Positions 23,274-27,283 are shown, numbered from the whole stretch's first letter. The stretch: 63,725 bases of DNA, filler included, from Octopus bimaculoides (GCF_001194135.2; 5 parts of 5 records of this genome joined end to end with filler, not necessarily neighbours in it), one strand, 5' to 3'. The notes: generated by a model not told the origin, from the sequence alone. Made by a program: numbers and translations.

Positions 23274-23797
23274 AAAATATCGGCACAGTCTCTAGAGACA
23301 TGTTCTTTGGAAAATTCTGCGAGAACGACATGAAGTACGTGACGAACGCAAGGAAATTGGTGATACTGAGCGAGATCTGCTCTCCGCTCTCTGGAGGCGA
23401 GAAAAAGGAGAGCGATGCGATGAAAACGAGCAGGCTGCACGGTATTAAGCTGGCGAATATGTGGTAGATGCACTTCCGTCTAGCAGCTACAAGGAACATG
23501 ATGCTTCTAGTTTTTGTTCTGTTACATTTGCAATCAGAGATCACGATGTTGTACCAACTGCGCTGTGTATCCTCGTAGAGTATTTTCAACTTGCTTTCTG
23601 GCGAATTATTAATAAGATTCATGTTCTGTGCGGAGATGCTGCTTTTAATGACGATCGGACATGTTTGATTGTCGAAAGGGAAATGCAACATGTTGAGTGT
23701 GCACAGCGTCGTGAAACTCCGGTAGATGTTCGCTTCGATGGTGCCGTTGTCTCTGATGTCCACCATATCGAAGGTAATTTCATGCGGCTCAACAGCA
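23274..23797 (-). CDS. Cys-loop ligand-gated ion channel (atypical nAChR-like / chemotactile receptor-like), exon with Cys-loop, loops B/C, M1, M2 and M2-M3 linker
   Basis: ttccccaag| acceptor and TTTT|gtaagt donor; 524 nt, phase 2 to 1. Encodes CTLNMLHFPFDNQTC, M1 with IPC.LL, PPESGEQISLSIT..L and ETVPIF. Splices in frame to 27174-27283. Confidence 0.93.
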
Positions 23798-23874
23798 CTT
23801 GGGGAATTACAAGTTGAAGACCAGCGTTGAGATTTCGGTGGTGGGCAGGGCGAGGGAGGACATAGGTGGACAGA

Positions 23875-24200
23875 TGTAATGATGGCGATGGTGAAAATCG
23901 TGATGGTGGTTGTGGTAGTAGTGGTGATGATGGTGATGGCAAGGGTGGGGATAGTGAGTAGTGGTGATAATGGTGGTTGTGGTGGGGGAATTTGTGATGG
24001 TTGTGGTGAGAATGGAGATGGTTGTGGTGGTGATGGTGGTGATGGTGGTGGTGGTGATGGTGGTGGAAGTGGTGGTGGTGATTGTGACGGTGGCGGTGGT
24101 GGCAGTGATTATTACAGCGGTAGAGAGATGGTGGTTGTGGTAGAGATGGTATGGTCGTGTTGGAGATTGTGGTAGTGATGATGAGGATGGTGAGTGGGGT
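23875..24200. repeat. (GGT/GAT)n low-complexity tract in the receptor intron
   Basis: Direct reading. Confidence 0.9.
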
Positions 24201-24473
24201 GGTGGACAGGAAAAAAGAGAAAATAAAAAGAAAGCATAAAAATTAGATAGAAATATGGATAAGTTATATTTTTACTTTGCTAAATGATTTTCTACTATTT
24301 GAAAATAATATGTATTCTTGTTTTTTATATTATTCATTTGGTTTTTTTTAAAGATTATTTTTAATAGATAACTTATTTAACACTAAATTATTTAGAAGTT
24401 AGAGTATCATTTCAACATAATATAAGACTTCAATTTGAATGGTGTTGATATATTTTCGATTATTTTTGATTAC

Positions 24474-24874
24474 TCTTTTACTCTTTTACTTGTTTCAGTC
24501 TTTTGACTGTGGCCATGCTGGAGCACCGCCTTTAGTCGAGCAAATCGACCCCAGCTCTTATTCTTTGGAAGCCTAGTACTTATTCTATCGGTCTCTTTTG
24601 CCTAACCGCTAAGTTACGGGGTCATAAACACACCAGCATCGGTTGTCAAGCGATGCTGGGGGGGACAAACACAGACATACAAACACATACACACATACAT
24701 ATATATATACATATATACGACGGGCTTCTTTCAGTTTCCATCTACCAAATCCACTCACAAGGCTTTGGTCGGCCCGAGGCTATAGTAGAAGACACTTGCC
24801 CAAGATGCCACTCAGTGGGACTGAACCACAAACTACTTGGTTTGTTAGCAAACTACTTACCACAGAGCCACTCT
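24474..24874 (-). mobile_element. tRNA-derived SINE, family 1
   Basis: Same head, tail and internal microsatellite as 17427-17930. Confidence 0.88.
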
Positions 24875-25614
24875 AAAACTTAGTATATATAAAGTTTAAT
24901 CTTTCATTCTTAATAATTTTTTCATTCTTAATTTTTTCATTCATAATTTTTTCATTCATATTTTTATTTTTATTTCTACGTTTGTAGAAATAAGTATTGT
25001 TGTATTGTTCTATTATTCAATTGATTTTTAATGATAATTAAATAAACGTTTTTAGTTTTAAATAGTCAAGCTTTAACTATTACACCGGTTAAATATGTAC
25101 TAATATTATCTTTATTATTATTTTAACCTTAAACTTCGTTCAAATTGTATGTAAAACGATAATAATTTATGTAAGCTGGTTTTTGTATAATATACATGTT
25201 AGCATATATTATAATGGATGTAGGGATGATTATGGAATGTTTATTATTTTGATATTTTTAATAATTTTTCTATCTTTATAAAATAAGTATTTTATATAAA
25301 TTCATTTGGTACTTATTGTTGGTTGATATATACATTTATTTATTATTATTATTGTTCTATTTAGACCTGACGATTAGCTGTATTTTAGAATAGAATTTAT
25401 TTTCGATAATTTTAATTGATTTTAATCGATTTAAATTTCCTTTCTATTTGAAAATTAGTTATGAAACACGTGTAGTCATTTTATTATCTTTATCTTATGA
25501 TATTTACTTTGTATTATATTTATTGTGCTTTTAATTATTAATTTTTCTATATGTAATAGTAGATTTTCATTGATGAGTTCATGAAACTTGGTTCTTTTAC
25601 CTAAAACTATATAT

Positions 25615-25680
<66 letters not shown>

Positions 25681-25765
25681 ATATATATGAATATATGTAT
25701 ATATATATGTATATGTATATATATACATATACATATATATATATATACACTCACACACACACACA

Positions 25766-25799
<34 letters not shown>

Positions 25800-25807
25800 T
25801 ACACAAA

Positions 25808-26060
25808 CAATAGCATGTTCGGAAAGTAATTGCATTTTTTCACCACTATGAAATATGAACCAACCAATCACGTTAGAGCCAAGATCGAATGGGCAGGAAC
25901 TGTCTAGAAATAGTATATTATCTCCTCTATTCAGCAGTGTGTCATTTATAGCTATTTCGGTAATTAGGTAATTAACACCATGGAAGATAAGAACTTTATG
26001 AAACAACATATTCGCCATTTCGTTTTGTATGAGTTTCGAAAAACACTATGCGGATGAACT
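25808..26060 (+). mobile_element. mariner element 5' remnant
   Basis: TIR-like tgttcggaaagtaattgcatttt (compare Hsmar1-type ggtgcaaaagtaattgcggtt), then MEDKNFMKQHIRHFVLYEFRK, the H.RH..L.EF.K N-terminus of mariner transposases. Confidence 0.6.
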
Positions 26061-26156
26061 AAGGGTATTTTCTCATAAGTTTGAAATCATGGTGATACGG
26101 GTATGTCTGACTTTTCAATTTCCGATTATTTTCGTCATTGATATAGGGTCTTAATC

Positions 26157-26535
26157 GAGGCACAATGGCCCAGTGCTTAGAGCAGCAGACTTGCGGTCGT
26201 AGGATCGCGGTTTCGATTCCCAGACCGGGCGTTGTGAGTGTTTATTGAGCGAAAACACCTAAAGTTCCACGAGGCTCCGGCAGGGGATGGTGGCGAACCC
26301 TGCTGTACTCTTTCACCACAACTTTCTCTCACTCTTACTTCCTGTTTCTGTTGTGCTTGTAATTCAAAGGGTCAGCCTTGTCACACTCTGTGTCACGCTG
26401 AATATCCCCGAGAACTACGTTAAGGGTACACGTGTCTGTGGAGTGCTCAGCCACTTGCTCGTTAATTTCATGAGCAAGCTGTTCTGTCGATCGGATCAAC
26501 TGGAACCCTCGTCGTCGTAACCGACAGAGTGCCAA
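26157..26535 (+). mobile_element. tRNA-derived SINE, family 2 (ggcgcaatggcccagtggttag...)
   Basis: Box A/B head, body gtgtctgtggagtgctcagccacttgc...ctggaaccctcgtcgtcgtaaccgac; homologs at 30586-30910(-), 31161-31316, 33814-34070, 42343-42610, decayed 16640-16905 and 39030-39180(-). Confidence 0.85.
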
Positions 26536-26744
26536 CAATGGGGTCTTAGAGCTTTTGTTCATTTGCCTGCCTTCACTTTTATGTTTAAATGAAAACTTGT
26601 GGTTTGGGTCATTTTGACTGCTATTTTTAGCATGCTGGTACTGTCTGTAATACATTTAATTATTAATTGATAATTTTACCTTTATGGTTTTTACGCATGC
26701 TCAACCACTGATATTATTATATACAATAGTATCCTTATATATGT

Positions 26745-26965
26745 GTGCGTGTGTGTGTTTCGTTGTGTCTGTGTTTGTCGCCCACCACTACTTGACAGCT
26801 GGCGTTGGTTTGTTTATGTCCCTGTAACTTAGTGGTTCGGCCAAAAGCAACCGATAGAACAAGTGCCAAGTTTAAAAAAACTTGGGTTGATTCATCCAAT
26901 TAAAAGTTCTTCAAGGCAGTGCCCCAGCATGGCCGCAGATAAAAGAAAAAGAAAAGACAAAAGAT
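26745..26965 (+). mobile_element. SINE family 1, 3' half
   Basis: gtgtctgtgtttgtc...gcagtgccccagcatggccgcag. Confidence 0.7.
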
Positions 26966-27173
26966 ATGGCAAAACCTCCCCGCAAAAAAACCCAAAACTA
27001 AAAGCGAACTCATTTAAGAACCCAGTATTTTAGCTGCTATTTCTAGCAGACCGAGCGACCATGTAGAGGCTTTTCGTCGTTGCCAGTAAATTTGAAAATG
27101 GGGTAAGAATGAGGGGTGGATGAGCAGTGGGATGGGGGTATATATATATGGGATGTAGTTGTGTGATCCTTAC

Positions 27174-27283
27174 CTGTTGGCTAACACCAATCGAGGGGTC
27201 CAGATCTCGGTCGCAGGAAGCGTGAGTCTGTCCACTCCGTCGTACGCATTTGAGTCCCAAGTTATTCCTTCGTCTTTCCACGT
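27174..27283 (-). CDS. Cys-loop receptor ligand-binding-domain exon (TWKDEGITWDSNAYDGVDRLTLPATEIWTPRLVLAN)
   Basis: tttttacag| acceptor and AG|gtaagg donor; 110 nt, phase 0 to 2, the size and phase of the conserved nAChR exon carrying W.D..L.W and W.P....N. Confidence 0.93.

Follow-up and report, generated by a model that had tools for sequence, protein, structure and literature searches.

Two exons on the reverse strand of a stretch of Octopus bimaculoides DNA belong to what is probably a live, single-copy, intron-bearing gene for a highly divergent cation-channel subunit from the family of nicotinic acetylcholine receptors (nAChRs). The stretch as a whole (the window) is 63,725 nucleotides long, filler included, and joins five parts of records of the genome GCF_001194135.2; the exons lie in one of these pieces, between positions 23,274 and 27,283. 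A preliminary description had placed the gene among the chemotactile receptors (CRs), the nAChR-derived receptors of the octopus sucker. That assignment does not survive comparison with the CRs sampled here: the gene lies outside the CRT1-type CR clade, and its exon-intron structure is the clearest discriminator between the two. It is an uncharacterized addition to a known receptor group, and neither a new CR nor a new kind of receptor.

Both Pfam domains of the family are recognized in the spliced product, Neur_chan_LBD (PF02931) with E=1.6e-23 and 83.7 bits (cut-off 26) and Neur_chan_memb (PF02932) with E=4e-8 and 34.2 bits (cut-off 28.1). With phmmer, 285 Cys-loop receptor sequences are retrieved from the PDB, headed by the beta subunit of the Torpedo nAChR at 94 bits, with octopus CRT1 in eighth place at 78 bits. 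An AlphaFold 2 (AF2) model of the peptide takes up the fold of the pentameric ligand-gated ion channels (predicted local distance difference test score, pLDDT, 71.6); the top Foldseek matches of this model are muscle nAChR, 5-HT3A, alpha3beta4 and Alpo4, and CRT1 is not among its top 50 matches. The Pfam domains, and an alignment of residues with canonical alpha subunits, Torpedo beta and CRT1, bear out the description of the gene as a divergent nAChR-like subunit of O. bimaculoides.

The three binding loops of the principal (+) face have lost their acetylcholine (ACh)-contacting residues, just as the preliminary description had it. In loop A, LVLAN aligns with IVLYN, which puts Ala at the position of Tyr93, and the Asp of the WxPD motif is replaced by Arg (WTPR). 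Loop B (KSSIS) aligns with GSWTY, with Ser at the position of Trp149. Loop C is approximately 12 residues shorter than in alpha subunits and is without Tyr190 and Tyr198; it reads C-K-C, not vicinal Cys-Cys. These losses are real, but the argument that was built on them is not diagnostic: Torpedo beta, too, has no Tyr in loop A, no Trp in loop B and no Cys-Cys in loop C, so that such loss alone does not exclude ACh-gated receptors. The missing WxPD Asp is the more unusual feature. The conserved W-x-P-P motif of beta6 is lost as well. From the start of exon B to the pre-M1 segment, the match to any solved structure amounts to only about 20 bits, all of them around the Cys-loop, and for the half of the ligand-binding domain between loops B and C no alignment with a solved structure is possible.

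The elements that serve gating and structure are kept: the FPFD core of the Cys-loop, the pre-M1 Arg, the M1 Pro, the PPESGE linker, the -1' Glu, the 9' Leu and the Val-Pro of the M2-M3 linker. In the pore sequence, PPESGEQISLSITNFLAF..., positions -4' and -1' are Glu, 2' is Ser, 6' is Thr, 9' is Leu, and 0' and 20' are Gln; the Pro-Ala-Arg motif is absent. Judged by these residues, the pore is of the cation type. M1 and M2 are seen of the four transmembrane helices; the exon or exons for M3-M4 lie outside the piece.

The two exons, A and B in order of transcription, are flanked by four consensus-like splice sites. Exon A follows a pyrimidine tract and the acceptor tttttacag/ACG (the slash marks the exon boundary) and ends at the donor AAC AG/gtaagg; exon B starts at ccccaag/TGCT and ends at ATA TTT T/gtaagt. 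Joining them restores a Ser codon (AG+T) and yields a peptide of 211 residues, TWKDEG...ETVPIF, that is free of stop codons; from the local base composition, the probability of 211 codons without a stop is about 1e-6. The preliminary description had proposed precisely this arrangement of two GT-AG-spliced exons around a 3.4-kb intron, and the product translated here matches its peptide exactly over all 211 codons. The same junction is also used by an independent public gene model, P0166. The intron is packed with repeats resembling short interspersed nuclear elements (SINEs) and with microsatellites, and the reading that a transposon has split an intronless gene was considered and rejected: the junction is seamless in the alignment and lies at GT-AG sites, and its position and phase are those of an intron of amphioxus and nemertean genes. 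The acceptor in front of exon A implies upstream exons (one of 45 bp, one of roughly 140 bp and a signal-peptide exon are expected) and the donor behind exon B implies at least one further exon, for M3, the intracellular loop and M4, outside the piece.

The gene structure is that of two intron-bearing relatives, an alpha10-like gene (P0170) of the nemertean Lineus longissimus and an alpha9-like gene (P0026) of the amphioxus Branchiostoma floridae. The latter is a canonical subunit with Cys-Cys and loop B Trp. Exon A has the length, position and phases of the 110-bp exon in both genes, and exon B corresponds to their single large exon, with the same end residue and phase. The ancestral plan, a phase-2 donor after ...L-x-N and a large exon that ends in phase 1 after V-P-(L/I)-(I/F), is followed, and the three visible introns coincide in position and phase (0, 2, 1) with those of the Lineus and amphioxus genes. 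Since they are common to a protostome and a deuterostome gene, these intron positions are ancestral. Exons of 45 and 110 bp are also found in vertebrate nAChR genes. An origin of the octopus gene from retrogene-derived CRs is implausible, because three introns would have to have been regained at exactly the old sites.

The CRs are described as characteristically intronless, which has been attributed to retroposition (PMC13174522, citing van Giesen 2020). Most of the nAChR genes that have expanded in molluscs lack introns and are arranged in tandem, and the intron-rich ones keep conserved intron positions (PMC6896357). For direct comparison, residues 83-283 of CRT1 were recovered from the PDB alignment (9E6B) after the published Strep-tag of the CRT1 construct had been appended to the query; this fragment then served as the seed for a set of O. 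bimaculoides, O. sinensis and O. vulgaris proteins that are 52-66% identical to CRT1. Five CRT1-type genes from the three octopus species are each a single uninterrupted open reading frame (ORF) of ~400 amino acids, the O. sinensis and O. vulgaris copies being intronless like those of O. bimaculoides. The three O. bimaculoides genes lie within ~60 kb, at 37.93-37.99 Mb of CM046615.1. The gene under study is on another chromosome record, CM046629.1, and no other match to the family was found near it in the readable part of ~26 kb, in which gaps leave room for a neighbor.

The query shares 26-31% identity with CRT1 and its relatives, which is no more than it shares with subunits of amphioxus, sea anemone or Torpedo. 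A profile hidden Markov model (HMM) of the CRs ranks it 67th of 150 non-CR relatives. Five of the seven CRT1-type CR sequences in the alignment carry two Cys-containing motifs, MCNS and C[VI]AL, that are absent from the query. As an observation on the CRs themselves, the loop A Cys (MCNS) and the loop B Cys (C[VI]AL) co-occur in most CRT1-type CRs (loci L002 9803-11026, L003 3942-5174 and 9476-10531, L004 and L005) and both are absent from P0179 and from the gene at L003 9476-10531, which suggests, on this pattern of residues, a covarying and possibly disulfide-bonded pair.

The phylogeny that had been recommended as a check on CR membership was computed in two versions, both by neighbor-joining: tree 1 with 156 taxa, Kimura distances and 100 bootstraps, and tree 2 with 50 taxa, Scoredist distances and 300 bootstraps. 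The CR clade, made up of CRT1 and six relatives, has 100% support and leaves the query outside in every bootstrap of both trees (100/100 and 300/300); the query is its sister in 4% (tree 1) and 3% (tree 2). Introns, location, identity, trees and rank in the CR profile thus all speak against membership in the CR group as sampled here. A HMMER scan of 1.84 billion cluster representatives returns 5439 matches, with a best non-self identity of 34% and a mixed company at the top: amphioxus alpha9-like, sea anemone, limpet, nemertean, brittle star, the octopod Argonauta and unnamed transcript assemblies. A word-indexed homology search with the peptide returned only the gene's own model and one match of 27%. 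On these comparisons the gene is an orphan on a long branch.

Two octopod "alpha-like" proteins, P0041 and P0168, were considered as its closest relatives and rejected, being 29-30% identical and grouping with the query in 14-44% of bootstraps; the gene for P0168 is itself intronless. P0041, from Argonauta hians, belongs with an O. vulgaris gene (OX597838.1; L006 2001-3344) to a second octopod nAChR-like lineage, annotated "alpha-6-like"/"alpha-like". This lineage has neither the Asp of WxPD nor the Trp of loop B nor the Cys-Cys of loop C; in O. vulgaris its gene has no introns. The lineage differs from the CRT1-type CRs, and the 60 best PDB matches of P0041 do not include CRT1. CRT1 did not appear in PDB searches with P0031, P0023 and P0041.

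How the readings of this gene compare in probability can now be considered, with the proviso that they partly overlap and that our confidence in one does not exclude another. The reading that we think probable, a live subunit gene as described at the outset, draws on the open frame, the consensus splice sites and the combination of a conserved core and pore with diverged binding loops, features that argue for long-term selection. Several points weigh against it. Over 12 kb upstream and over the readable sequence as far as ~10 kb downstream, of which 1.6 kb is inside the piece, no N-terminal, M3 or M4 exon was found; the region has seven assembly gaps. A collection of 15 billion proteins yielded neither a longer nor a transcript-derived protein containing this sequence, nor an orthologue from O. 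vulgaris or O. sinensis, although the annotations of both species are included. In the trees the gene sits on a long branch, where no partner exceeds ~50% in tree 1 or 32% in tree 2, and both trees are neighbor-joining rather than maximum-likelihood constructions. The CR sample covers the CRT1 subfamily only, seven sequences of a reported 26 genes. Finally, loop D of the complementary face is encoded in a missing exon, and the verdict on ACh contacts covers the principal face only. Some of these points would suit a gene that is dead or dying, a two-exon relic of an nAChR-like gene from which no functional protein is made. The partial public models (172 and 219 amino acids), the very long branch and the setting among SINEs, microsatellites and transposable element (TE)-like ORFs fit a relic too. 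The intact frame, improbable in random sequence and free of frameshifts, and the four splice sites do not, and the divergence is patterned, sparing core and pore and altering the binding loops, unlike uniform decay; octopus introns are long, moreover, and the assembly gaps fall exactly where exons could lie. We regard the relic as rather unlikely.

The alternative that the gene encodes an ordinary non-alpha (beta-like) subunit of ACh-gated heteromers, in which ACh would bind at the (+) face of an alpha subunit while this subunit contributed the (-) face or none, is possible, if hardly the likeliest. Its best sequence matches are muscle beta subunits, the lack of loop A-C residues is shared with Torpedo beta, and the gene architecture is canonical and the pore of the cation type; what speaks against it is the Arg in WTPR (the Asp is kept in canonical alpha-type subunits, Torpedo beta and most other aligned relatives), the lost beta6 motif, the poor match between the start of exon B and pre-M1, and an identity of at most 34% to any known subunit. 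We consider it quite improbable that the gene encodes a CR subunit, that is, a sucker-expressed sensory receptor gated by poorly soluble compounds through a remodeled pocket. Being an O. bimaculoides nAChR-like subunit without ACh-binding residues would suit a CR, although non-alpha subunits and many divergent clades share that lack. The resemblances to CRT1 (WTPR versus WTPP, a very short loop C without Cys-Cys, PPESGE) occur also in unrelated divergent subunits. The high place of CRT1 among the PDB matches, and one point-estimate tree that puts the query in a loose neighborhood of 12 taxa containing the CR clade, have to be set against introns at ancestral positions, the separate chromosome record, low identity, an unremarkable CR-profile score and a place that is never inside the CR clade. 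Least probable of all, a long shot, is that the gene is a surviving intron-bearing member of an ACh-blind lineage that later gave rise to the CRs by retroposition, or else stands for an ACh-blind sensory Cys-loop receptor that arose in octopus independently, for a second time; either way, its unusual C-x-C in loop C and its ligand would be its own.

If the gene is alive, as we prefer to think, it would descend from the intron-bearing stock of the nAChR family and its product would assemble into a cation-conducting pentamer. Every canonical contact having been lost there, the subunit's own principal face should be unable to bind ACh in the canonical manner. Its more likely role would be that of a partner subunit in a heteromer; service as a receptor for another, non-ACh ligand is less likely.

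Comparison with better-known systems yields likenesses and differences in each case. The Torpedo/muscle beta1 subunits have in common with the query its best match score, the absence of the principal-face residues of loops A-C, the same exon plan and an M2 of the cation type, and differ from it in having the WxPD Asp and the beta6 Trp-Pro-Pro, at ~30% identity and with no possible alignment between loops B and C. The CRT1-type CRs (PDB 8EIS/9E6B) are, like it, nAChR-derived Cys-loop cation-channel subunits of the same species, without the aromatic-box residues and the WxPD Asp, and with a short loop C lacking vicinal Cys and a PPESGE linker. Unlike the query, which is a lone gene with at least three ancestral introns, they have no introns and are closely clustered, in a well-supported clade of their own, and most of them have the loop A/loop B Cys pair that it lacks. 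Alpo4 of Alvinella (PDB 8BX5/8BYI), likewise a spiralian subunit without the signature ligand motifs, is unresponsive to ACh and is among the best structural matches (template modeling score, TM, of 0.74 normalized to the query); its identity is 24%. Several divergent clades of nAChR-like proteins have been described in molluscs (PMC13174522), and numerous members of such clades are without signature ligand motifs and not ACh-responsive (PMC13174522, PMC6896357). The query has no demonstrable orthology to any named clade and is not intronless, as most of the expanded members are. Lineus P0170 (an XP_ entry, "alpha-10-like") has the same exon boundaries and phases and is also without loop B Trp and loop C Cys-Cys, but it is only 27% identical and is sister to the query in 0% of bootstraps. 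As an aside on the Lineus gene, a methyltransferase gene of the NNMT_PNMT_TEMT family is called within its long first intron (L009 4605-5962).

The gene is located at 2.83-2.85 Mb of CM046629.1 in the assembly GCA_001194135.2 (locus L001), which is identical to the window across 12,125 shared bases. Its sequence is already deposited as a partial, uncharacterized or hypothetical protein: a model of exon B alone (172 amino acids) is in NCBI nr and EukProt, and P0166 (219 amino acids; UniParc UPI000695933C), with exactly the splice junction given here, has no start Met and reads past the donor of exon B into CKYFQLHF*. That tail was rejected as coding, its C-K being derived from the donor consensus T/GTAAG; the Lineus gene behaves in the same way. 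Raw tblastn searches for further exons were swamped by low-complexity sequence and were replaced by a family HMM applied to all six-frame fragments of the piece and its public flank, which recovered only exons A and B. M3/M4 matches were absent from 21642-23273 and from the readable part of L001 beyond it, where a 5.6-kb gap begins at the edge of the piece. The sole candidate for the 45-bp exon, at 30566..30522 (-), is flanked by AG/GT and encodes KEINIYLQMVVLAMM; in a position-specific scan it scored 0.3 bits in absolute terms and 15 bits above the next. Its place, with a SINE tail on one side and a GGT-type microsatellite on the other, led to its rejection as probably a chance match.

Features of the octopus gene (window coordinates) and the corresponding exons of two relatives
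Feature	Position	Strand	Details
Exon A	27283..27174	(-)	110 bp, phase 0 to phase 2; beta2-beta4 region and loop A; encodes TWKDEGITWDSNAYDGVDRLTLPATEIWTPRLVLAN + AG of split Ser codon; family HMM 44 bits
Exon B	23797..23274	(-)	524 bp, phase 2 to phase 1; remaining ligand-binding domain, M1, M2, M2-M3 linker as far as ETVPIF + T; family HMM 133 bits
Intron between exons A and B	23798..27173	(-)	3376 bp, GT...AG, phase 2
Splice acceptor before exon A	27284..27285	(-)	AG of tttttacag/
Splice donor after exon B	23272..23273	(-)	GT of T/gtaagt
Loop A region WTPRLVLAN	27176..27202	(-)	from alignment with canonical alpha subunits
Cys-loop CTLNMLHFPFDNQTC	23659..23703	(-)	C-x13-C with FPFD core
Loop B region IKSSIS	23632..23649	(-)	from alignment
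Loop C SDCKCNRTKTRS	23503..23538	(-)	from alignment and model; tip of beta9-beta10 hairpin in model
M1 helix CIYHIFASLIPCSLLVFIASLSFF	23401..23472	(-)	conserved Pro kept
M1-M2 linker PPESGE and M2 pore helix QISLSITNFLAFVTYFMSFSQ	23317..23397	(-)	M2 itself 23317-23379
Assembly gaps	28284-29203, 29788-29797, 30226-30235, 32390-33289, 34626-35032, 36419-36518		and a 5.6-kb gap at the edge of the piece
Octopus gene, exon plan			45-bp exon not found; 110-bp exon TWKD...LAN + AG/gtaagg; large exon ends ...ETVPIF + T/gtaagt
Lineus longissimus alpha10-like P0170 (L009), small exons	L009 9794-9903 (110-bp exon)		45 bp; 110 bp, GWHD...IQN + AG/gtaat
Lineus P0170, large exon			starts with C completing Ser codon; ends ...ETTPLL + T/gtaaga
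Branchiostoma floridae alpha9-like P0026 (L010), small exons	L010 6700-6809 (110-bp exon)		45 bp; 110 bp, YWKD...LTN + AG/gtaaag
Amphioxus P0026, large exon			ends ...TVPLI + G/gtaggt; last exon with M3-M4 follows

The surroundings of the gene are rich in repeats. Interspersed copies that are 85-97% alike lie at 26150-26532 (+), 31197-31317 (+), 30588-30909 (-) and 33812-33988, and one of them contains an Rfam tRNA match (30834-30903 (-), 30.4 bits); by this match the family looks like a tRNA-derived SINE, with one copy in the intron of the gene. A second family of ~400-bp repeats, 88-95% alike, is found at 24461-24873, 29574-29968 and 34327-34536 (inverted), again with one copy in the intron; its translation has the recurring motif FQSFDCGHAGAPPLVEQ. 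Trinucleotide microsatellites lie upstream of both acceptors (27291-27800 and 23830-24180), an (AGT/GGT)n array abutting exon A and a (GGT/GAT)n array ending ~30 bp from exon B, so that the coding strand reads pyrimidine-rich. They also yield long spurious open frames, such as one of 286 amino acids at 23251-24108. On the opposite strand, just downstream of exon B, are ORFs of 131 amino acids (22825-23217 (+)) and 174 amino acids (21896-22417 (+)), which by eye look like TE fragments, the one endonuclease-like (LGLCETRW...) and the other transposase-like (...FHQDISAMEKRYQGFWN). Further ORFs, of 140-153 amino acids, at 35653-36314 (+) and 37796-38242 (-), lie in the single part of the piece with a higher GC content; one of them is rich in Thr and Pro and one in Pro, Glu and Ser. 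Pfam searches with six other ORFs of the piece gave no matches; the ORFs of 131 and 174 amino acids and those of the GC-richer part are without a Pfam match.

For a mollusc the finding is ordinary, divergent members of the family without binding residues being common. A total of 78 nAChR genes has been reported for O. bimaculoides (PMC6896357). If the gene is alive, an orphan subunit would join these ~78 nAChR-like genes, and loss of the ACh pocket in octopus would not be confined to the retroposed CR arrays. The rule that an nAChR-like protein without binding residues is a CR over-calls; it is intron structure and phylogeny that tell the CRs apart.

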